64,000 bases of DNA from Marsupella aquatica (GCA_973895155.1 OZ316898.1:17412752-17476751), one strand, 5' to 3'. Shown: positions 6,040 to 53,985, counted from the first letter of the stretch. Numbers and translations are program-made. Notes: a model not told the origin generated them from the sequence alone.

Positions 6040-8215
6040 GTTGGATCCCCATAGATATCCACGTAGACATGGAGTACTAAGCTAACCAGTATTAGCAGTG
6101 TAAAAATGACTTTCTATCATTGGTAGGACTACAAAATGTGACCAAAAGTGGAGCAATTCCAATTTCATGCTAAGCGTGGTTTAAGGTTTAGACCACGCAC
6201 CATGGTCAGTGGCAGTGGTAACTCGGTCAGCCCTAGAGGGTAAGAGGTAGCTACAAAATAGTAGGCCAGCCTCCCCTCACTACCTTTCCCTTGTTAAATC
6301 CCAAACATATCTAGGGAGACACAAATTAAGTACTACTCAGGGTACTACTCTAACCAGGGTCAACAGGTAGAAAAGACTTACAATCCCCAATGGGACGGAA
6401 AGTCGGGGTACTCCAATTACTTATTTATGTAAGTACAATATATTAGTGAAGGCCAATTTGTATAAGAAATTAAAGTTCTTTAGAGAGCTCGATCTTGGCT
6501 GGCCTTGCACTCTAGTGCCAATGGTCACCTGGTCAGCCATTTCGGTTAGCCCTAGAGGGTTAGAGGTATCAGAGTAGTCAGCCCACCCTCCCCTGCCTTG
6601 TCCGATCCCAAGAGGTATCCATGGAGACACGGATTACTACTCTAACCAGGGTCAGCCGTTAGAAAGGACTTGCAATCCCCAATGGGATTGAAAGTGGGGG
6701 AGAGATGTACTTAGAATCCATGGAGACACATAGTATGAGTGCTTGAGAGTAAAAAAGTTTTGTAGAGAACTGTCTTACTTAGCGGGCCTTGCACTTTGGT
6801 ACCGATGGTAACTTGAGTTAGCTGTAGAAAATTAGAGGTCGCCACACATTAGTCAGCCCATCCTCCCCTGCCTTTCCCTTGTCCACTACTTAGCTGGCCT
6901 TGCACTCCAGTGCCAATGGTAACTCAGGTTAGCCCTAGAAGGTTAGATGTAGCCACACAGTATTCAACCCGCCCTCCCCTTGTCAAAGCCTCACACTCTT
7001 CCATAGAGACATGGAGTACTAGAGCTGAAGACTAAAAAGTTCTTTAGAAACCTGTCTTACTTAGCTGGCCTTGCACTCTGGTCTCGATGGTAACTTGGGT
7101 TAGCCCTACAAGGTCAGAGGTAGCCACACCAGTAGTCAGCCCATTGTCCCCTACCTTTCCCTCGTCCACTACTCGGTGGCCTTGCCCTCTGGTACCGATG
7201 GTAACTTGGGTTAGCTGTAAAAGGTTAGAGTTAGCCACACAATAGTTAGCCTGTCCTCCCCTGCCTTTCCCTCGTCCACTACTTAGCTGGCCTTGCACTC
7301 CGGTACCAATATTAACTCGGGTTAACCCTAGAAGGCTAGAGGTAATCACACATTATTTGGTGGCCTTACACTCCGGTTAACCCTAGAAATTTAGAGTTAA
7401 TCACACATTATTTTGGTGGCCCTGTACTCAGGTAAATCCTAGAAGGTTAGAGGTAATCACACATTATTTTGGTGGCCTTGCACTTGGGTACCGATGGTAA
7501 CTCGAGTTAGCTATAGAAGGTTACAGGTAACCAACCACACATTAGTCAGCCAGTCCTCCCCTGCCTTTCCCTTGTCCACTCCTTCGGTGGCCTTGCACTC
7601 CAGTACCGATGGTAGCTCGAGTTAACCCTGGAATGAATGCTAGAGGAAATCACACATTACTGATGATAACTCGGGTTAGCTCAGTCTAGAAGGTTAGAGA
7701 TAACCTTACACTAGACAGCCCATCCTCCCCTGCCTTTCCCTCGTCCACTACTTCGGTGGCCTTGCACTCCACTACCGATGGTAACTTGAGTTACATTACC
7801 GATGATAACTCGGGTTAGCTCTAGAAGGTTAGAGGTAACCAAACAATAGTCATCCACTACTTTGGTGGCCCTTGCACTCCACTACTGATGGTAACTCGAG
7901 TTACATTACCGATGATAACTCGGGTTAGCTCTAGAAGGTTAGAGGTAACCACGCAATAGTCATCCACTACTTTGGTGGCCTTGTACTCCACTACCATTGG
8001 TAACTCGAGTTACATTACCAATGATAACTCGAGTTAGCTCTAGAAGGTTAGAGGTAACCACGCAATAGTCATCCTCTACTTTGGTTTGGTGGCCTTGTAC
8101 TCCACTACCGATGCTAACTCGGGTTAGCTCTAGAAGGTTATTAGAGGTAACCACGCAATAGTGAGCCCGTCCCGCCCCTGCCCATACGCATCCATGGAGA
8201 CACGGAGTACGAGCG
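6040..8215. repeat. Degenerate tandem array (~16 copies, 55-130 bp units) immediately upstream of HUB1
   Basis: Recurring core ggccttgcactcc..taccgatggtaactcgggttagc.ctagaaggttagaggta.ccacac, plus a recurring ccatggagacacggagtac block. Confidence 0.92.
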
Positions 8216-9319
8216 CTGGAGAGGGACGAGGGAGTGGGGGAGAGAGGAAGGGGGCGAGAAGGGAGAGTGGGGCGAAGAAGGGGAAGATTGTCGGGAGACG
8301 AGAGGAATGGAGATTGACGCCCGAAGGTGCAACAGGAGGAGGAGGAGAAGAAGGCCAGAAGAAGCAGTCGTGGAGGAGCGTTGTCGAAGAGGAGGAGGAG
8401 GAGGAGGAGACGATTATTTCGGCCTCGGGTTGTCGACTGATGAGGGTTGTTGCTGCGTTCTTCGTCATCTTTCTCGTCGTCGTCCACTATTCCTCTCATT
8501 GACGCCTGCTTCTTCTTCTGTCGGCCAATCTCACATTTGTGGAGTTTCGGTTTCGCTCGCTGCACTTCTCCGGATCGCTGCGTATTATTTGTAGCAATTT
8601 CCGCGCCTCTCGCGCACCTTGGAGTTCCATTCGGGGTCTTGTCCCGACTCTGCCCATCCACTGCCCGTGTGGTTTAGGGGTGATGACCACTTCTGCCTTC
8701 TCCGGATTTCTTCTCAGGACGTCGATGACGACGTCGCATTTTTGATGTTAACCAATTTTTGTGTGTAGTTGGAATGGAGGACTTTTCCTATGCTATTGCT
8801 GTTATGACCCTAGAGTCTGCCTCTTTTTCGCTTTGTTCGGCTGCTCTTTCGTCTCGTCTGCGGTGCGACTCGTCAGCAGCTATACGGGGTGCGATGTAAC
8901 ATTTTAGCCACGGCTTCTACTGCCTCTGCGGAGTTGTGTTTTGCTGGAGTTCCTGGCGTCAGTGGAGAGGCCTTCTACGGATGTGTGATACACTTTTTTC
9001 GGCTCGTCCGTCTCTCCGGAGAGTCATCGCCGAGGGGCGTGAAGCGTGGCAATAGAGTAGAAGTAGGGTTTTCTGTGTCTCTGAACGCGGTGGAAAGGCA
9101 AGGTCATGAACGGCTAGGAAAGGGAAGGGAAGGAAGGGAGGAAGACAAGGGCAAACTGAGGCAAGCCACGACGCATGTTGGGAGGTCTTTCTCGAAAGTA
9201 TTACTGTAATTTTAGAGTTTTTTTGGTGATTGCTTCTGGTTGTCGAACTGGAGTTCGTACGGGCAGCTGTTGTAAGCAAGCGAAGGCCCGATAATGCGCC
9301 GCTTCAGGCCCGGAGTAGC

Positions 9320-12300
9320 ATGGGAAGCACTGAGGAACCTGAGAGGAAGCGGCGCCCTCTTCATGATCATACCGCCTCTCCCCCTCTCAAGAAGCAACCC
9401 ATGGCTCCCTCTTCAGAAGAGAAAAAGGTAAGCTTATTTTTAGACCTCACAATTTCATACCATTGGCTGCAGTAGGGTTGTGGTGCATTCCTACCTAGTT
9501 TATCGTTGTGAAACTGGCACCCTCTTCCGTCCCTACAAGAATTGTATCAGTGCGTGCCTCACCATTCGTGAAATTTGTCGCGAAGGTTTAGGAAGCCACG
9601 CGTTTATCTCCTGGACAGACATATTCTTTTGTTATCTAGATGTAGGGTTTGTGGACTTAGCCAGAGCTGTTCTGCTGTTCATTCTGGCAGTGCCTCTGGT
9701 GTGACTCTGGGTGCCCTTGTGTGGAAAATGTAACATCTGTAATCGCTATTAGTAGGGTTTCTTTAAGGTCATGAACGTCGTTGTCTCCTTCCCTACATCC
9801 AGCGCGTTCCAGGAGAGTTTGGGTGTCCTCGTGAAAGCTGATAGTAGTTCTACTTTGTGACCAGGTCGACGCTCAAGTATTACAATACCAAAACCAGAAA
9901 TTGGCACAACAGTTGGACGTGCAACGGACCGAAATTCATGCACTTGAAACTAGGTTCAATCAATTGAAGTCAAAGCAAGTTTCATACGATGAAAGTCTCA
10001 TGTGTGTGAACCGCGTTTGGAATCAGGTACTTGTGCTGTTCCTTTACCCGCTAGCCTGTCATTGTTTGTTTCGCCGTCGAACATTCCGTTACAAGTGGAA
10101 TGCCACACGACGTCAGGCATAAATGTTGTTTATGTGAATTGACGACGGCAGTGTTTTTCTTCTTCTTCTTCAGTTAGTGGATGATCTGGAGCTGCTCACA
10201 GTCCGTGCCAATGCAACTTGTAATGGAATACGGGTGTTGGAGGCTTCTGCCTCCTCTAAGGGTAATATTGTTTTCCCCTCTGAGCGTCGTCCACGATTCT
10301 TTCTCCTTACTGTCATCTTGGGCTTCGCTCTCGTACGTTGAGTCTGGCACTAGTTAGGACGTCATTTTGACTCGGAAAGATGTGTGCTGCAGAGAGAGTT
10401 CCAGCACCCCCCCCGGAACACACGTTTCTGCACCGACTTTTGGAAACCGGTGCAACAGAAAGCAGCACTTCTGCTGATAACAGCAATTCTGTTGATGCCG
10501 CCCTAAATGTTCGAAAGGCATCCACCGTGAAGACTATGAAATGTCTTGTCCAGGCAATCGATGTTCAGCGCAGCAAAAATGAGGAGCTTGCAAGCTTGTT
10601 GAGAGAAAGGGTCCCCGGTGATGGTAAGTCAACTGTATACCTTCAGTTTCTGTTCTCAGCTTGGGTTGGTCTTGGGTTTGTTTGATTCTTCACTCCCGTT
10701 CCTAAAATTTCAGATCGATGATGCTATGTCAATTTCAGTGTAATAATCTGCACCATTGTCGCTTACGGTTCCCGAAGATGGAGCGTGTACATGGTTGATT
10801 TTGTACTACCTAATTTCAAACAAAGGTCGAAAATCTGCACTTTTTGTTTGTGATGGGCCCAATCCGAAGGTTGAAAGTAGTTACTTCTTTGATTGCGACA
10901 GAGGCTGGGCGCCATCTACAAAGAGTCGATGAAGATCTCCGTGCTGAAATCTCGACCCTTCGGGCAAGCATGGATGCCCTCCATCTTAAGTACAAGGAAA
11001 TTGCTACCGAAATAGGGGTATGCCGAGACGCTCGGGCAAAAGACCAATCAGAAATTGCAAGACTCGCAGGTAAATGCACTGAACCTGAAGGAATAACGAG
11101 GACGTGTGCATTATTAGCCGTTGCGCGTTTTGGTGATTGCTTTATGATTTATAAGAGGCAAAGTACCAACTTCCGTGCTTATGCCCGTTAGTCTGAGCGT
11201 GGTACTGACTCTGTAGACGTTTTTGAAATGCCGTTGCCTTCAGAGACTTGTTGCCAGCAGTAGGGACTCTAGTTTGAGCATCAAAGCATAGGTGCTATAG
11301 TATATCCGGGTTTGCGAGCTATAGGGACCTCTGGTTTAGAGCATCTAAGAACGTGTGCAATAATCTATTCTGGTTTGACAGGCGAGCTTGAAGAGACAAC
11401 CCTTGACCTGGAGGCTAGTAGACGGAAAATGGCATCCCTACGGAATCAGAAAGATGTTGTTGTTGGGCCTCCTACTCCGAGCCCAATTCCAGGAACAAAG
11501 AGTGATCATAGTGAAAGAGGGGCCTCTGAAAAAGCCACAAAAGAGGCTAAGGAGTTAGAGTTTGCTCTAGAGGAAGCCAAGGTTGATCTCTCTTTCTCAC
11601 TCTCTTTTGATTTTCACTATGGAAAGTATGTACAGAGTCTTCGATAGAGTTCTAACTCACCCTATTGCAGATGAGCCCAACAATCCCTCTGGAGCGACAC
11701 TGAGGCTAACTTGCATTGGTGGGATTCTCGTTGATTGTCAGTCCTTAGCAGCAAGGAGACTCACTGAACTTCAAGACTCTCTTCAAACGCAGTTGAATCT
11801 TTCTCAAAAACTGCAACATATGCAGGTATAATGTGCTGCAACCATTGTCATATAGCCTCGGTTACTGATGTAGACTTGGGAGTCCATGCTTTGCCGTCCT
11901 TGCAATTGCTGGGTATGACCTTGTTCCTAGTTGCTGTAGTAGGTCAGGTTGTCTCGGCCTTGTTCTACGCTATGATCTGTGTATTGCAGCTCCGATAGGA
12001 GTATTGAGTTTTTATCGTGGACTGGATCGTGTTTTTTTAGGACCTTTTGGGTGAAGAGCAACGAATACTGTCTTCCCGTCCTTATCAACTGCTCAACGAG
12101 CAAGTACAGCATGCTAGGAGTGAGTCAGACCGCCTTCGGACCGCCAATGAAGAATTACGGGTGAGTCCATCGATTGGGTTTCTAGTAACCATTCCATGTT
12201 GTTTTTGGACGAGAATTACACACCCACTATCCAGTTACAAGTGGTGTCACAATGTTGACCTTTTGTTACGGTTGTGTTTGCAGAAAGATCGTGATGCAGC

Positions 12301-22713: not shown

Positions 22714-24120
22714 CACCATAGACAGTGCAGCCTATGGCTTCACTCTATGGAGTAGGTCATGAAAGGAAGACTGTGATTGTAAATTATGGTATAGATTTTA
22801 TTTTTCTGGTGCCTGCCGGCAAGGAGGTGGTGCCCAAGATGTAAGAAAGGATACTTCCTGGTTCAAAGCACATCAAAGTAACCCCTTCTTTCCATTTGTT
22901 CCTTTCCTTAGGTTCTTGTCCTTTTTATTTATTTATTTATTTATTTATTTTTAGGTTCTTGTCCTTTTGTCCTCTTCCTTTTCTATCTGAACCTGGTAGG
23001 GGAAACCCAGGTTCTCCCTGGAACCTAAAGTCCACCAGGGTGTCTTACAAGGGAGGGAAGAACCAGGGTGAGGGTAACCTCTTTCCAGCCCTTGTGATCA
23101 AAAATACATTGTAGTCTGAATGAACCCTGTGAAGTATTTTAGGCTTTCCCTTGCACCTCATTCTGTGGCACAACGCATGGTTGTGGAATATTCTTTGCTC
23201 TGATTCTCATGTGGCTTCAGCTTGGCAGTCTTACAAAGAAAACAAATGGAAGTAGTACTAGGTCAACTTCAATAAAATCGAGAATAAAATCATGCCTTGT
23301 TGTTTACCCTGGTGGTCCTGTCTCTTGGTTACGTTAAACAGCCACAGTCTGTTGTCAAAACTTGTTGGATCCGGGTCACCATAACTGGTTAATAATGTTA
23401 CTAGCAAAGTGGAAAAGTGAGCCAAAAATTAGTTTTTGTCCTCCCCATAGCTTTTGGACACATTGGGGTTTAAGAACCGGTCCAGCAGGTGGGGGTCTCA
23501 AATCTTAGCTGTGAGCTTTCAAGTTCTGAGCTGGACAAATCAAGAATTGACCCTTTTGAGGGTGAATTGTTTTTTTGTTTTTTTGGAGGGGGGGTGGGGA
23601 CTGAGAATATTTTATTAATAAATCCCTTTTAGTGTGATAGTGGGGCCTATTGTTTAAAGTTCTTCCTTTCTTGCTACTGTGGTCAATCTTACCTGGTGTA
23701 AAGTAAAAGATTCTAAGAAAATTCTGTTAAGCTTAGTAGATTAGTTTATTATATATATTCTAAATTCTATATATAACGAAAATCATCAGATTCTGGCGAG
23801 TGAGGTCATGACTATGAAACTCAGGAATCCGAGACCAAAAAGAAAAAGGTTAATTTATTAGGCCAAAAGTGACATTTTCTTCTTAGTGGGGTGAATTTCT
23901 GCGAATTTTCGCACTTAAAAAACACACATATTCATCATTCTGTCCCCGACTCAGCCCCTAATTAATCCGTGGACCCCCAAGTTCATCCAAGAAAATGTAC
24001 GTGTGTGATGAAGTGAAATTGTTTTATTTTGAGCAAATGAAAGAAAGAGGTAAATGTTTTGTTAATGCATAATATTTTTTTGAAATAATATTTGATCCAC
24101 TTAACAGTGCCTAAGTCCAT

Positions 24121-24998
24121 CTATTTGGCATCATATTTGCGCTTCAAAGAAGCGCCCACTGTTGAGGTCTCATCCCTGTTCTTAGCAGGGACGTCGGTGA
24201 TCAGGCCTTCCTCGCTGCTCCTCTGCAGACGATCGATTAGCGTTTGTGCGTTGTCTTTAGTCAAGTTGACCAGCATGTCGATTGGCATCTTGAAATCGTG
24301 TCTCAGCCTTGTAACCTGGGCCAGATGCGCTCCCTTGGTATGCTGAATGTATTCGTGTGTCGCCTCCTTCTTGGTCAGCTGGTCCTCATCGAAAGGTACT
24401 GCCATGTACCTGAGCACCTCTTTCTGCACTCCTGTGTTACAATTTATGGTTGAGTTAGTACATTATTGTTCTTTAATGTTGTAAGATGGGTTTGAGTGGG
24501 ACTTTGTTACCTGTTGCTGGTCTCTCATTAAAGAGTTCCTTGAAATCTTCAAAGAATTTCTTGCGGTTGTCTATCAATTTTGACATGTCTTTTTTGCTGA
24601 TGCCGAAGTCCCATTCTGAGGCTTCCATTCCCATACCGTCTGCGTACTCGATCTGTTTGGTCGTGGGGACGTCTATCTCACGACTATGGTCCCCTGTAGG
24701 CAGCTCACGCATGATCAATCGCGCCAGCTCGACTGCCGTCATGGGCTGAAGTGAGACACCGACAAAATGTTAGTTGGTTTTAGTGTCACGTTAGTTGTTA
24801 TCAATTTCTTTACATCTGTTTTTCCTAATGAATTTAATAGTGGTGAAGAGATCTGGAGATGGATTGTAGTGGTATTACCGTCGTAATGTTTGTCTTGGCA
24901 GCTGGTGCAGTTGTCTCAATGTGCGCCGGCTCTCGTGGATGTGGTTGGGATGACTTCCCGACTTTGCTCTGTTTGCTGGTCGACATCTGCTTCACCAT
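24121..24998 (-). CDS. Predicted 3-exon protein (~220 aa) with three DUF3072/Irc3-tail-like repeats, adjoining the RepHel
   Basis: Exons 24998-24879, 24745-24511 and 24431-24121 are joined by phase-compatible GT-AG introns (ACG|GTAATA..TTCAG|CCC; ACAG|GTAACA..ACAG|GA), giving ...TNITT|PMTAVELARL...RPATG|VQKEVLRY...LKRKYDAK*. Confidence 0.65.
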
Positions 24999-27900
24999 GA
25001 ATGGGCAAATCCTTGGATAAGCGAAACACTCTGAAGTCGGACGGCTTGAGATTTCCAACAATGCGCATGAATGACCTGTTTGTGACTCTACTCAACATGA
25101 CATAGACTAGCCCGGGTGCAAATGCATTGCTAATGTCCAACACGACCTTGTTGGATACCGTGCATCCTTGGCTTTTGTGTCCGGTAATTGCATACCCGAG
25201 CATCAAAGGGAACGTGGATTTTCTATAGGTCTCGAGTCCTGAGAGAAATTTGTTTTCATGCACTGTGCGGTTCACTTTGATGAGACAGTGGTTGGAAGCC
25301 AGGCGGATAGAAATAGTCATTTTGCCGTTGGTGTCGGTCTTGATGTCCTCAATGACTCCGCCGTTGCCGTTGACTGCATGTTGGGCAAGGTCGATGTTAT
25401 GTGTGAGAATCACCTTGCATCCAATTGCTGCGGTTGATAGTGTGTGGAAGTTGGAATCTTGGATCCAAGCTTTCGTCACATCAGTGAATGGGGCATTTGT
25501 CAATATGGGGATGTCTATGATGTCTTGTGGTGCAAAGTAGCTTTGTAGGGCCAGGTTGTTGTAGTTGTTGACGGAGTCTCTATGCGTGCATATGACGGTC
25601 GTAGAGGCGTCCATGAAGTCTAGCGCTTCGGTTTTTGAGACATAGCATTTTGAAAGGCAATCCTCGATTGATTCTTGGGTGGGGAGCTCTGTCCGGATTG
25701 CATTGAGGAACTCCATGAATTGTCGGTCCTTGCTTTGTCTGAGGATTGTGCTGAGGTGGAACTTTTGCATGGACTCATAAAATGGCGACGCTGATATATG
25801 ACACAACTTGCATATGTTGTCTGTTTGATGGTTGCATACTGGGGGCAGTTGGCACATGTCACCCACTAGGATCACCATCTTTCTCTTGAAAGGGTCGGCG
25901 GTGCGGTACTCATCTTGGAGTGTCTCGTGGATCCTTGTGGAGATACACCGCAGTAGTTTAGGCGTCAGCATGCTGGCCTCGTCTATGACAAAAATGTCGT
26001 TGTTTCTCAACGTCTGAAAGTATGGGCTTGTGATGTGGAGAGGTCGGAGCTCTCCGTGTGTCGGAATGTTGAACAAGGAATGCATAGTCACTGCGTTGGA
26101 GTTGAGGTTGATTGCGGCCGCGCCTGTGGTGGCACACATCTTCACCGACCTTCCTTTTGATCTCCAATACCTGTCCATGTGTGCTATGAAAAAAGTCTTG
26201 CCTGAGCCCGGGTTCCCGTTGATCATGAACAGTCCGCTTGTGACATCCTTGAGTGCCTTGAACACTTCCTTTTGGTCTGGAGTCAACTTTACATTTTGGA
26301 TTGCTTCTTCTGCAGTGGTGGTGGCCATTGTTGGTGGTACAGTATTGGAAGGGCCTGGCTGGAATGTGGCTGCTTCCTTAAAAATCTCAAGAGGAAGCTT
26401 GTCGTTCAGTTCATGCAATAGGTGCGATGTGTGGTGGGTCGAGTAGAGGTGCGATGTGCAGTACTCAAGAACCAATTGGTGTATGTCATCTACGTTGTTG
26501 ATCAACTTGCGATGGATGCACTCGTGTAGGTAGGTCCAAGTGTCGCTAAAGGGTTTGAGGAGAATTTCTCCTTCAGCACGAAATCTTACGACCTTCAACA
26601 GGTAGTTGTAGAAGAAGCCATTCATCTTGTAGACCGGATGGTACTCCAAAAATCTCACGAGCCGGTTTGTGCGATACACAAAGTTGCCTTGTAAGTCTTG
26701 ACCAACATAGTCACTGTTGTTGCTTTTCTTGTTGGTGAGGACCTCATGGTTTGTGAAGTACTCATGGAAGGACATATCAAAGAGCGCCTCGGGCCTCTGT
26801 GCGTACAATCGAGTCGGATGTAAACATATCCCTGATGATTTTCTATAGATGGCTGATCTTAGCTCAGGAGGGGAAGAATCCATGTAGAACACTGTCTCTG
26901 AGCGGTGTATGATGTTGATTTTGAGGCATGTCAGAGCTGCCTCCGTGGCGCACACGCTTCGAGAAAGTACTGCTCCACTGACCAACTTTAGTTGAATTTC
27001 AGTCAAGTCGTCCAAGCCTAGGGTACGTGCATCATCAACATTTAACTTGAGAGATCCCAATGGCTCGCATTTGATGGCGTACTTGAGCAAATAGAATGAC
27101 CAAGCTGCATTTGTGACGCGTTGGAGGTTCATGTGCGCACCCCACAATAGTAGCACGAGCGGATGATATGGGACGACATTTCGATGGTGGTCACTTGGCC
27201 TGAGATACCTCCATCTGCCAGTGGTTGGATTTATCGTGGCGATCCTCTCAGAGTATGTCTCTTGGGGGAATCCCAATTTACAATATCGTAGACCTGTTTG
27301 GTGTTGCATTTGCAAGCATAAGCCGGGCTTGCAGTAATGCATTTGCTTTGTCACCACATTCTGATAGAGTGTTCTGTCTTCTGGATTTTCAGGCTCTTCA
27401 AATCTATCCAATGCCTCATCAAATCTTCCAGGAATGTATGCAGCTATTTCGTTTGTGACACGATCAATGTCGGGTTCCTCCACCCATAGCACAGTGTGTG
27501 CATGTAGTGATCCTCTTCCCTGCAACTCATACCTGATGATGTAGTGCAACACCTTGCCAAGTATGGCATGTCTCGACAAAATGTATTCCTTGAAAAACCG
27601 TTGTATTCGTTCATGGAAAAGGACAGCACATTCGGCCGGACAGTCTTTCCATGAGAACGAACGATTCATTCTCTTTGCTATGGTTCCAAATCTGCTATCT
27701 CTGGCCATCTTGTGTCACTAAGCTCGTCACAAGTCAACGTTAGGAAGAAGTGTGGCAAACCCCATTTTCTCACCATGCACTTTAGGTCATCAAGATGTTT
27801 TCCATGCCACGCTGGGCTTCCGGGAACAGCCTGGGTGATTGTCTTCTTTATCAACATTTTGTAGATATCCTTCTCGATGAAGTGTGGGAACTTTTGCTTA

Positions 27901-29042
27901 ATGGACAAGTATTCCTTTTCTATCACTGTCGTCCTGCTCATGGATGCTATCTGGCTGGCCTGTCGCAGCTGGTACATGATGAGTAGATATGGCTTGTACA
28001 AAGTGAACACACTGAATAGCTGTTGGGTTCTGCGTTTCATGTAGTTGATTAAGCTAAGTTGTCCTTGGTGGAATCCCCTGGAGTGCACAAACAGGAAAGG
28101 GAACATTGCAGTCTCCAATGTCAATTTTGGATTTTCAGATAGCCCTTCAACATTGGTCTTGACTTCTTCTTCCGTGCACATCCGCTTGCGAGCGTAAACG
28201 GTGCCGGAACGGAAGATTTGGTAATGGCGTTTGCGTGAAGTTGGGATTGTGTACGTCACGTCTTGCAAGATGTGTAGATCAGGGTCAAAGGGGTCAAAGT
28301 TCATGGATCTTGTGGTGATTCCTTTTGCCCTTTTGTCTTTGAGGATTTCATCGACAGCCTCGGAACTGAGGATGCAGAGTCCAAGCGATGGTTCTGGCAA
28401 CTCGACCAACGACACGTATTGCTTGAAAAGTTTGTTCTTAGTCAAATTCAATTCCATGACCTTGTAGATCTGCAACATGATCTCATCTTTGTTGTCACAC
28501 TCCAAGGTCTCCAAATTCCAAGATATCAAGGGGCTATCTAGGAGGCTTTCATTCTTATAAAAGCCAGAATGGAAGCCATGGAACTTTTGTATGATGCCCA
28601 GTCGACAATCGATCAATGACAATAGTTGCATGTAGAGTGGCTTTGCGGCCAGGATATTGATCGCGTATTGTGGAGACACAAAAGTGTTAATCTGAATCCT
28701 TTTGGGATTTCGAGCGCATGTTACGCAAACATTCACTTTTTCATCCTAGGTATCAATGTATTGGTTCATGAAAGCGTTGCATATCCCGTATGGCGTGACG
28801 TCAATCTTTTGAACAGTGGTGAATGTCATATCGAGCCTTGATGTGTTGCCATAACGCACAAGTCCGCACATTCCGCACACCCTCATGTCTCGTACCGTCT
28901 TTTGGCAGACTGTTTGCCATTCTTGTAGATACAATTGGGCCGAGGCCCATCCTTGACAGTATGGGCTTTGCAATTCAGCATGGGCGAGTGTGGCACGCTC
29001 TCGTGCTGTATCTCTTCTCTCAGATAATGTACGGCGCGACAT
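24916..29042 (-). mobile_element. Rolling-circle transposon (Helitron-like, Helentron/Helitron2 type) Rep/PIF1-helicase, ~1375 aa when repaired; one in-frame stop and one frameshift
   Basis: N-terminal CxxC pairs (CGMC, CVTC). Rep motif 1 GLPHFFLTLTCDE, HUH motif 2 YIIRYELQGRGSLHAHTVLW, motif 3 YLLKYAIK. PIF1 motifs GNPGSGKT, IDEASML, GDMCQLPPV, LRQ, FPLMLGYAITGHKSQG, YVMLSRV. TAG at 28746-28748 is in frame with the next ORF; a -1 frameshift falls near 27683. Confidence 0.95.
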
Positions 29043-29504
29043 TTACTTGCAGCCCTATGCATATCAAGAAGAAAGGGTCAGGGTTTATGCAAGAATACGG
29101 TCTGCCATGAAATTTCACATGGGAAGAAATGACCAAAGTTGTGATCCTAGCTTTGCAAAGTAAACCATTTTGAGGTCAAGTGAATGAGTTTTGTGCAAAG
29201 CACAAAGAAAGAATGTAAGTGATGACCTATAATTAGGTGGACATAACTTGTAGAATCATGGAGCAACGTGGAAGACATGGAAGTGCCATAGTTGAGGTCA
29301 AGAGAATGAGGTATGATAGAAAGGATGTAAGTAATCGCCTCTATATAAGTTCCATCTCAGTATTTAGGGTCATCCTTCTGTATGAACCCAAACGATTTAA
29401 CATTCCAATTAGGAAAGTGACAGAGTTATCCTCTACCGTAACTTGTGGATGAATGGGGCAAGTTATGTATTACGCCAGATTTGGCTCTATATATATTCAT
29501 CCAT

Positions 29505-30930
29505 AAGGACGAATACTAGAAACCTAAGCACATTGTGTACTTTCAAAGTAAGGGATATTGTTTTATGATGATATGTGAAGCTACAACACTCACTAGCACT
29601 AATATCCATTTCAAGCTGGAAATTTAACTTCTATTTCACCTGCCTTCAACATCCTACAACTAAAATACACTGAGTACAAACTGACTTTCTACTAGAATCA
29701 TAAATTTACTTATTATTTTATTTTATAAGTTGTTAATGTTATGTTTCTATATTGATGATATAATAAACTGATTCCATAGTAGGGTCATTAGTTTTCCACT
29801 TCTTCCTCTTGTTTGTTCAGTTTTGATGTTGTTTGTACTTTAATAATGTTTTATGTAAGAGATAAAACAAACTCATGGCAAAGTAGGTTTGGTGTTTAGT
29901 CTTAGCATGATGTTTTGTTTTATAACTTTTTAAAGATTGCTTTACAGTTATTTTGAATTAAAGTCACATTTATAACACATGATTGTGCCATTAGCTTCTC
30001 ACTGAAATATTTGTTGCTGTTAGACTATTGTTATAACGATTGTTTCTTGCAGTTTTTAAGAGAGTTGAGTTGTATAGAATGAACATACTTGTACCACAGA
30101 CAATCAATAATTGTGACTCGTATTGCAGTTGCCCTTCCAAAGAGTTGATGTGTTGTAATCCACCTATCAAGGTAAGAGATCATGGATTGACACTCATAGT
30201 ATTTAGTCAGATGCTTGATTTATACAGTTGTTTGCTCTATATTTATTCATGAGGACAAATACTAGAAACCTAAGCACATTGTTAACTTTGAAAGTAAGGG
30301 ATTTTGTTTTATGTGTCTTGGACAGATTACCAACTAAAATACAATGATTACAATCTGACTTTCTACTACAAATATAAGTTTACTTACTATTTTATTTTAT
30401 GCGTGTTAATGTCATGTTTCTATATTGATGATATAAAATATTGATTCCATAGTAGGCTCGTTACTTTTTCACTTGTTCTTTTTCACTTGTTCCACTTGTT
30501 AGTTTGGTTTTCATGCTCTTTTTGCTTCAATTACGTTTTTCATATAAGAGATGTGTTGTAATCCACCTACCAAGGTCAGAGATCGATCATGGATTGGCAT
30601 GCATAGTAGTTAGATGCTTGATTCATACAGTTGTTTGTTCATATAAGCGATAAGTCTTAGCATGATGTATCGGTTATAACTTTTTAAAGATTGCTTTACA
30701 GTCCTTTTGAATTAAAGTCACACTTATAACACATGATTGTGCTATCAGATTCTCAGAAAACTACTTGTTGTTGTTAGACTATTGTTATAACAATAGTTTT
30801 TTGCAGTTTTGAAGAGAGTTGAATTGTATAGAATGAACATACTTGTATCACTGACCAGCAATAAATGTGTCTCGTATTGCAGTTTCCCTTCCAAAGCGTT
30901 GATGTGTTGTAATCCACCTATCAAGGTGTA
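29505..30930. repeat. AT-rich segmental duplication (blocks of ~100-370 bp, rearranged) upstream of the RepHel
   Basis: aggac.aatactagaaacctaagcacattg at ~29506 and ~30252; agtcttagcatgatgt...ccacctatcaagg at ~29898 and ~30653. Confidence 0.85.
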
Positions 30931-51830: not shown

Positions 51831-53199
51831 CCATTTGCACTTTGGCAAAACTGACATTGAATTTTGGCGATTAGATTTTTGGCCATTTTGTTTGATTTTG
51901 TCATAAATGTGAAGGGGTCAATTTCAGCAAATAGTTTTTCATTGTAATTAACATGAAATATTTAAGCTTGTGTTTTTTCATGTCTCCTTCTTCTCTAGTT
52001 TCCATGCAGCCCAATACAAAACTACAACTCAATTAGGATTTCATAATTATCAATTTATTAGCTGCCCTTAAATTCCCATGAACTAGCAAAATGTGATCCA
52101 TGGGAGCACAACACTATGGTCCATCCTGGCTTCAATTTACTCGACAGTAGAGGCTAGTGATTTTTTTATTCACTATAATGATTCAGTCACCATTAGTCAA
52201 TACCTATGTTCCTCAACGGCAGAGGCTAGTGAATTTTGTTTCTTTGTACATAAACCTTGTGAAGTGGCAATGACCATTTTTTACAGACCCACTAGAGGTC
52301 CCTTCCAAAATTCCTGGCACCACAGCGTGCCACGTCAACAACAACCGCAACAAACAAGACTCGTCGGTTTTGTGAATCAAACTTATAGTTTTCATTCATG
52401 TTTGTGTCAATTTGGGTGTAAATTTTGGGACGCCGTGCCGTAAAAAGAAAAGTAAAAACATGGGAAATACAAAGAGCAAGACGGTTAAAACTGTCACTAT
52501 GTAACCGTTTTAGTTACATTTCCAATTTTAAAACTTAAATTCAAAGATTTATAGAAAGTATTTTTCATATAATAAATAATGACTAATAACTAACTTGATA
52601 ACTTCCTTGTTAAACCGCAACTCCCGGTATGTAAGGACCTCTCGTATTGTACGGCCATTAATGCTGGGAAGAGCACATAGAATCTCAGGATCGGGGAGGA
52701 GGAATGGCTGGAATCTTGAAAGTTCATCGAATTTTATACTCAAAACTATTTACTCATTCTCAAAAAAAAAATATACCCGGTCGTAGATCTCATTGAGATC
52801 TTTCTTTTGCACCCTAGATCGTCTTCTAACATGGATGAATAAGATTTCTAGAGGCATTACAAAATGGACGGCAAAGATCGTAAAATTAACAAAATCGACA
52901 GCTAGGAAAGCTTGGATTTGTTTAATTTTTCATTTAAAAAATATTAACCCATTTGCAAAATGGACAGAACACATCCATAGATCTATTTGAGATCTTTCTT
53001 TTGAGTCATAGATTGGCCATTATGATGGACGAACAAGATTTCCGGAGATAAGAAATGTTGACGGCTCAGATCGACTCTTCCCCCTGATTTTATTAGTCAA
53101 GGGGTCCACTAACTAATTGATGGTCATATGGCATCATCCTTAATTTGAAGCTTTGAGGTGCCCTAATATAAAGAAAATGATGCGCGCTTGTGCGCCATA

Positions 53200-53985
53200 A
53201 GGTCCACAACTGTGCATCATACAATACCGAGTAGAAGACTACAGTAGCAGAGGAGGAGAGAAGTCAGTCCGTTTGTCCCTCAGCGATCAATAGTGGAGCT
53301 CGGGACGTAAACACCAAAGTATTATAGAAAAGGAAAAGAAAAACAGTTCCACCAAAGTTTATACACTTTATACAAAAAAAATGATAGAAAAATTTGATTC
53401 ATTTACAACTTTGAAGTTTTGAAACGTCCTAAAGGAAAAGAAAATGATGAAAAGCAATGATGAAAAACAGTGATTAACTGTTTCCCTTTTTTTCCTTGGT
53501 CCCATTGGATGTGTCTGGTCTTGGGGTGGTTGGTGGCCCTAGCCCTTGTTTCAGGCTGGCCTGGTTCGTCCCTGATTTAATGGATTTTGCTTTTTGGATT
53601 TCACCTTTCAGAAGAGTAAAGTGCTCCTTTCATTTTATTTTATTTTTAAAATGATTAGTTTTTCGCAGTGCGCGATACGGTCCAAGACTGTGCAGCGTAG
53701 AATGCCGAAGAGAAGACTACAGTAGCAGAGGAGAGAAGTCCGTCCGTCCGTTTCTTTCCGTCAGTCAGTGTTGGATTTCACCTTTCAGATGAGTAAAGTG
53801 CTCCTTTCATTTTTATATTTGTAAAACAATGATTAATTTTTCGCGGTGCTCGATACGGTCCAGAACTGTGCAGCGTACAATACCGAGGAGAAGACTACAG
53901 TCGCAGAGGAGAGAAGTCCGTCCGTCCGTCCGTTTCTTTCCGTCAGTCAGTGATCAATCGTGGAGCTCGACTGCGGTCGGGACGC
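53200..53985. repeat. Triplicated segment upstream of eIF2B alpha (2 x ~178 bp tandem plus a diverged partial copy)
   Basis: ttggatttcacctttcaga.gagtaaagtgctcc...agaagactacagt.gcagaggagagaagtccgtccgtccgtttctttccgtcagtcagtg at ~53594 and ~53771; partial copy at ~53200-53310. Confidence 0.85.

Follow-up and report, generated by a model that had tools for sequence, protein, structure and literature searches.

The stretch of Marsupella aquatica DNA analysed here, a window of 64,000 nucleotides, contains a Helitron-like element read from the minus strand. Its RepHel gene (24916-29042) joins a Helitron_like_N Rep domain and a PIF1 helicase in one protein, the combination by which a Helitron-like RepHel is recognised, and is colinear at 39-56% identity with an intact 1346-aa relative, P0001. 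The gene is broken in this copy. An in-frame TAG (28748-28746) separates an N-terminal 98-codon ORF from the remainder, both sides being colinear with P0001, and a 1-nt deletion at approximately 27683 is absent from most other copies in the read data. Disabled twice, this RepHel is accompanied by a small downstream gene that is intact. The conserved part of RepHel ends at a ..DF.VF motif (approximately 25024), and the tail of the window ORF beyond it is not conserved and overruns the first exon of the small gene; in two related loci, L001 and L006, RepHel stops right after DF.VF. The element had been labelled HLE2 in the original prediction. A DUF6570 domain N-terminal of Rep is the proposed marker of that group (PMC11417382), and neither the window's N-terminal ORF nor P0001 matched it at E≤0.1, so the label is unverified and was not borne out on this marker, the one tested.

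The small gene spans 24121-24998. Reading of the minus strand recovers three exons and two introns, confirming the originally predicted model of three ORF pieces joined by two phase-compatible GT-AG introns (24878-24746 and 24510-24432). The coding pieces of 40, 78 and 102 codons, together with one split Gly codon, give a predicted protein of approximately 221 aa with a basic C-terminal tail. Candidate exon 1 (24879-24998, 40 codons) has an ATG at 24998 and a second at 24986, and ends in phase 0 at ACG/GTAATA; it encodes a Ser/Thr/Pro/Lys-rich stretch, likely disordered, and overlaps in another frame the non-conserved 3' tail of the RepHel ORF. Intron 1 (24746-24878, 133 nt, GT..AG, phase 0) closes with a pyrimidine tract and CAG. 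Exon 2 (24511-24745) opens in phase 0 and closes, after PAT, in phase 1. It holds 78 codons plus the first base of the split Gly codon, and its product comprises helix-loop-helix unit 1 and, before it, a conserved N-terminal helix (..AVEFAR..L.ELP). Intron 2 (24432-24510, 79 nt, GTAACA..CACAG, phase 1) lies within the Gly codon of a PATG motif. Exon 3 (24121-24431) completes that codon and continues for 102 codons to a TAG stop at 24123-24121. Units 2 and 3 of the helix-loop-helix series come from this exon, followed by a G-L-x-D-[VI]-P motif, a variable linker rich in acidic residues and Ser, and the basic tail. Beyond the stop, the 3' untranslated or terminal part of the element (23960-24120, same strand) contains an AATAAA at 24028-24023 and ends at the family boundary near 23960.

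When exon 3 was compared exhaustively with 1.84 billion representatives by phmmer, nine relatives were returned (E 5e-18 to 6e-5, 37-52% identity), a tenth match being low-complexity noise. Word-indexed protein homologue searches that took exon 3 or P0039 (191 aa, from a JGI sample) as query added nothing new, and metagenome-contig scans with the same two sequences were empty. Seven further loci, one of them in the liverwort Riccia sorocarpa, carry homologues of exons 2 and 3 whose protein sequences are 30-50% identical, and exon 2 is matched in five loci (L005, L006, L008, L009 and L011) at E 1e-9 to 1e-40 by tblastn and HMM. Four of these five, L008 being the exception, present an exon-2-like ORF, a gap and then an exon-3-like ORF (E down to 1e-40). 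All four gaps are GT..AG introns that share the exact position and phase of intron 2, inside the Gly codon after P-A-[TS], and the acceptor of this intron is also seen in L007. The sequences and lengths of these introns are unrelated. In the Riccia locus (L008) and in P0039 intron 2 is precisely missing with the frame uninterrupted; both read contiguously through the junction (...P-A-T-G/R then [IL]-[MQ]-K-E...), which is precisely the splice of the original prediction. L005 and L006 share the Met at 24742, with which exon 2 begins its conserved part.

Substitutions between these loci follow a coding pattern, with differences at 0.53-0.77 of third codon positions, which are saturated, at 0.41-0.62 of first and at 0.25-0.46 of second positions. 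The ratio dN/dS, proposed at the outset as a check on the gene, is approximately 0.19 in the three between-locus pairs with estimable dS, and purifying selection is thus seen.

The Riccia locus lies on a chromosome of the R. sorocarpa assembly GCA_046195345.1 (PMC11923412), at approximately 37.70 Mb of CM100797.1, where an annotated 132-aa gene (L008:8001-8663) is a decayed copy of the family. It keeps an intron-1-like gap and lacks intron 2; its start Met is replaced by Arg, and its frame is interrupted at 8310-8312 by a stop, around which the annotated gene model splices. An N-terminal fragment of RepHel lies on that strand 1.9 kb further downstream (10553-10768), and upstream there is no RepHel. 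This copy is a pseudogene.

The start of the protein is supported by position and not by sequence conservation. Exon 1 has no significant sequence similarity at any locus examined, and its similarity to the ORF downstream of the L001 RepHel is not significant. The acceptor of intron 1 (pyrimidine tract and AG) stands 3 nt before the conserved Met codon, a location shared by the window, L006 and L008. Upstream of it, L006 offers an ATG approximately 27 nt past the RepHel stop, with a short frame to a GTATGT donor in frame with exon 2, and L008 an annotated first exon with an ATG start and a GTATAG donor, likewise in frame with exon 2. In L001 an ATG occurs approximately 28 nt past the RepHel stop, and the spacing between the conserved DF.VF motif and the window ATG at 24998 equals that seen for the ATGs of L001 and L006. 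The frame upstream of exon 2 is open in L011, with Ser/Thr/Pro-rich codons, and the majority difference of other copies at 24885 is synonymous in the exon 1 frame. This positional support makes exon 1 genuine on the balance of probability, in which case its low-complexity Ser/Thr/Pro-rich region probably forms the N-terminus; the conserved Met at 24742 is an alternative start.

Membership of the gene in the element was assessed with contigs from four DNA runs of two organisms, aligned at a likeness of at least 80% and taken together rather than read as separate copies. Hundreds of related pieces extend across 23960 to approximately 29250, and the summed contig depth over 24091-24878 is comparable to that of the RepHel bins in all four runs. 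The gene is thereby placed in most copies and inside the termini, which supports the original prediction that it belongs to the element. We set the end of the element at approximately 23960 because many contigs there run on into diverse unrelated flanks. The last 130 nt or so (bin 23894-24090) are about tenfold more abundant than the coding body, as expected if non-autonomous derivatives share the terminus, and this suggests a large family of such derivatives with only the terminus in common. At 23991 many contigs change to another shared consensus. Within the gene, other copies show alignment breaks at 24788-24828, inside intron 1, a 2-nt indel and an alignment break inside intron 2, and a 3-nt in-frame insertion at 24168/24169 in exon 3.

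Short terminal inverted repeats and a TT target are features by which the HLE2 class is recognised. No terminal inverted repeats were found between the two ends within 23900-29500, the 5' end being located only imprecisely, and no unusually stable 3' hairpin was found at the terminus. Just past the 5' side of the element, a unit of approximately 750 bp is tandemly duplicated at about 90% identity (29492-30927; repeat families D3, D9, D10 and D13). Clusters of tandem or dispersed short repeats with units of 110-300 bp (families D1, D2, D4, D5 and D6) occupy 6785-8085 and 53190-53947.

A place directly 3' of RepHel, proposed in the original prediction as a check on homologues, is seen for the gene here and in related loci. 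In the window the ATG of exon 1 overlaps the RepHel tail and exon 2 begins 174 nt past the RepHel stop; in L006 a decayed RepHel C-terminus lies approximately 350 nt upstream of exon 2, and in L001 an ORF opens 28 nt past the RepHel stop. The L001 contig, whose RepHel is 51-56% identical, ends 200 nt past the stop, and the partner exons are present in L009 from the same ENA sample. The gene therefore has a fixed position at most 4 kb away on one side of RepHel, which is the positional criterion applied to Helitron-like elements in PMC11417382. Downstream of three distant RepHels (L002-L004, 35-39% identity) only unrelated ORFs and no such gene were found, from which we conclude that the gene is specific to one RepHel sub-lineage and is not essential for Helitron-like elements in general. 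Two of these metagenome contigs carry ORFs of 150-165 codons directly downstream of RepHel (L002:5936-6427 and L003:9320-9784), without Pfam match and related neither to one another nor to the gene described here. We hold with high confidence that the window contains a real, conserved, element-borne gene, and consider it likely that this gene is translated separately from RepHel.

Assigning the product to a known family proved unsuccessful. Searches of Pfam, NCBIfam, PHROG and PDB sequences returned no match for the window exons, each queried separately, or for any homologue. The original prediction had proposed a resemblance to DUF3072 and to the C-terminal tail of Irc3-like helicases. By eye, unit 3 (G-A-x-L-x-Q...P-x-D...L-T-x-x-Q-A-x-x-L-I-x-x-L) does follow a pattern like the one proposed for DUF3072. 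However, the assignment fails in its defining test, since hmmscan gave no match to DUF3072 (PF11272) at E≤1 for exons 1-3 or for homologues P0036-P0044, the full-length P0039 included. In the ESM Atlas the neighbour cluster of rank 7 (score 0.78) has DUF3072 in 14% of its members, a score that shuffled sequences also reach; a query with the full-length homologue gave no usable match, and the neighbours overall were at noise level. No helicase was found by PDB sequence search with profiles A3 and A5, nor any above Z 4.2 by fold search. Four families of HeH modules (helix, extended loop, helix), namely SAP (PF02037), LEM (PF03020), HeH (PF12949) and Rho_N (PF07498), had no Pfam match at E≤1 among the window exons or homologues. 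The known accessory domains of Helitron-like elements (RPA, OTU, EN and others in PMC11417382) were likewise without a match, as had been anticipated.

The three tandem repeats originally proposed fared differently in sequence and in structure. In sequence they are marginal: BLASTP of exon 2 against exon 3 found nothing, pairwise alignments of the three units gave p = 0.17-0.82, and in hhalign profile-profile comparisons only the second repeat against the third (R2 against R3) rose above 200 column shuffles, and only over a 16-column L-T-K-x-x-A helix, R1 against R2 and R3 not doing so. The predicted structure does contain three helix-loop-helix units, and the basic tail is also present. AlphaFold2 (AF2) was given alignment A3, of 11 rows, with the natural contiguous homologue P0039 as first row and the window exons kept as separate rows. 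It modelled residues 20-145 (approximately 125 residues) with pLDDT 88-96 and pTM 0.66, the remainder being disordered. Seven helices (19-27, 41-62, 69-77, 89-99, 105-114, 119-122 and 127-143) form three units of helix, extended loop and helix packed into one compact predicted domain that spans the exon 2/3 boundary. A three-unit architecture is accordingly plausible in the structural model, and not demonstrable from sequence. Modelled by AF2 from its own sequence only, exon 3 gave a poor structure, for which Foldseek returned nothing.

The profile or fold match proposed as a check in the original prediction was obtained neither in Pfam nor in structure, a confident AF2 domain being the outcome. 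No fold match to the A3 model emerged from PDB or BFVD by Foldseek, or from the 48,161 chains compared by VIA-align; the best Z was 4.2, where 7-8 is typical even for unmatched models, and the structural matches cover approximately 40 residues. That best value belongs to unit 3 superposed on a TFIID segment (rmsd 1.2 Å), which is a lead only. Unit 3 (model residues 104-143) also superposes on the LEM domain of emerin (Z 3.3, rmsd 1.5 Å, 36 residues, 28% identity) and on the SAP domain of MANF (Z 3.0), both within noise for small helical motifs, and the C-terminal unit on the three-helix, protein-binding C-terminal domain of Red-beta (Z 3.7, 47-48 residues), a weak likeness that is again within noise. 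Directly past the last helix, the G-L-x-D-[VI]-P motif is strictly conserved. A basic tail of S-P-x-[AG]-K-[RK] type (SPxKR/K) is conserved in most homologues; it is similar to minor-groove motifs of the SPKK kind, to CDK sites and to nuclear localisation signals.

How the gene should be understood depends on several readings of unequal probability. The simplest is that there is no gene, and that chance frames have been joined through fortuitous GT-AG pairs in decaying transposon DNA. ORFs of approximately 100 codons are indeed common in the 64-kb window, so that ORF length alone is no proof of a gene, and the exons are without Pfam match. Against this stand protein conservation by HMM to E 1e-40 in seven other loci, the shared intron position, the coding-type substitution pattern and a confident AF2 domain across both exons. 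Homologues, intron position and codon-position pattern exclude chance ORFs; the comparative data refute this reading, to which we give almost no credence. The three exons could instead form a spliced C-terminal extension of RepHel, giving a fusion protein in intact copies. The candidate exon 1 of L006 is in the frame of the decayed RepHel, 27 nt past its stop, the window RepHel ORF overruns the exon 1 ATG, and other copies carry 1-nt indels at 25006, 25012 and 25015, in the non-conserved RepHel tail, where a net change of -1 would bring RepHel into the exon 1 frame; the acceptor conserved just before the exon 2 Met would also suit such a fusion. Yet L001, the closest intact RepHel, ends after DF.VF and has stops in all three frames before the next ATG, the L006 RepHel likewise stops right after DF.VF, and the extended RepHel tail of the window is not conserved. 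The contig of P0039 moreover has approximately 450 nt between the upstream ORF and the gene, and no good in-frame GT donor exists in the RepHel frame upstream of 24916. We regard the fusion as highly improbable.

A separately translated gene may still be a passenger, taken from the host or from another mobile element, that plays no part in transposition. Gene capture is frequent among Helitron-like elements (PMC11417382), the retained introns are as expected for capture at the DNA level, and the R. sorocarpa copy is annotated as a gene with no RepHel upstream. That copy, however, is a pseudogene that has lost its Met and acquired an in-frame stop. The nine relatives, all that the search of 1.84 billion representatives returned, are on short contigs or beside RepHel remnants, and none is a host gene in annotated plant proteomes. 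The place of the gene beside RepHel does not change among loci with only 40-50% protein identity, and purifying selection persists over that divergence, which is unexpected for a useless passenger. Capture is therefore disfavoured, by the lack of a host-like orthologue among those representatives and by purifying selection across loci with approximately 50%-identical RepHels, and we judge it distinctly unlikely. It is also conceivable that the same element gene acts through protein-protein contacts, as a RepHel cofactor or as an adaptor recruiting a host replication, repair or chromatin factor. Such a contact could run through the G-L-x-D-[VI]-P motif, strict conservation of which directly after the last helix speaks for it, as do the closeness of the gene to the RepHel stop and the weak likeness to the protein-binding Red-beta module (Z 3.7). 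LEM domains, too, bind a protein, BAF, rather than DNA. Since the structural matches all lie within noise and a basic SPxK tail would be more usual in a protein that binds DNA or is nuclear, we consider the adaptor role unlikely, if less so than capture.

The reading that we tentatively favour is of a new, lineage-restricted accessory gene of a Helitron-like element in liverworts, whose product would bind nuclear DNA or chromatin and help RepHel. From the HeH-like units and the basic tail we infer DNA or chromatin binding in the nucleus, a role that we hold possible rather than probable: no family, motif or fold match for DNA binding was found, and structural Z values reach at most 4.2 over approximately 40 residues. 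The helix-loop-helix units might act like SAP/LEM-type (HeH) modules and the basic tail in nuclear import, in SPKK-like minor-groove binding, or both. Bound to nuclear DNA or chromatin, at the element ends or on the excised intermediate, the protein could assist RepHel in end recognition or in handling or tethering that intermediate. The likeness to HeH modules such as SAP, LEM and Rho-N lies in each unit being a helix, an extended loop and a helix with an [LI][TS] N-cap. Unlike those modules, the units of the window protein pack into one domain rather than standing as independent motifs, they have no Pfam match, and the superpositions reach only Z 3.0-3.3. In a stronger form, which seems doubtful to us, the lineage would be a true two-component rolling-circle transposon with a three-HeH-unit, orphan-fold protein as obligatory partner of RepHel. 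The partner would then be the product of a spliced gene that is coupled to the 3' end of RepHel, and its task might be to recognise the ends of the element or to anchor the excised circle on chromatin.

Comparison with known systems places the gene at some distance from each. In the HELIANO survey, 20 domains are recorded as stably carried in Helitron-like elements, among them RPA-like, OTU protease and AP endonuclease domains and 17 others (PMC11417382); none corresponds to the window gene. The survey relied on ORFs of at least 100 codons and Pfam (PMC11417382), and a spliced orphan gene is missed by ORF and Pfam surveys because it is spliced and has no Pfam family. Helitron2 has been described as encoding a single ORF (PMC4067079), and no Helitron Rep was reported among the proteins of Marchantia polymorpha (PMC8788227). 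The window gene shares with the accessory genes of Helitron-like elements its status as a second coding unit at a fixed place by RepHel, inside the element and in most copies, which is HELIANO's sense of stably carried. It differs from them in being an orphan family with its own fold, spliced and confined to one RepHel sub-lineage. An accessory gene of this kind is undescribed for Helitron-like elements.

A parallel from another class is offered by PIF/Harbinger, which are two-component cut-and-paste elements with a Myb-like ORF1. There, as here, a small helical protein of nuclear type is encoded beside the transposase and conserved with it. The transposon class and the fold are nevertheless unrelated, the window gene has no Myb/SANT match, and the need for the Myb-like protein in transposition has been shown for Harbinger, a requirement that can only be supposed for the window gene. 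By analogy with the Harbinger protein, we propose as a model that the partner binds DNA and aids in targeting to the nucleus or in recognising the ends; plant Helitrons, with their RPA-like proteins, may provide a further analogy.

Helitron-like elements shape plant genomes, and only RepHel and a handful of accessory domains are known from them. How ends are chosen and intermediates handled in Helitrons is unclear, and the gene described here is a candidate for a missing cofactor of these steps in land-plant elements. If the two-component reading is true, it would add a protein family and a fold not yet catalogued. Liverwort genomes carry a previously unrecorded lineage of Helitron-like elements with a gene content of its own.
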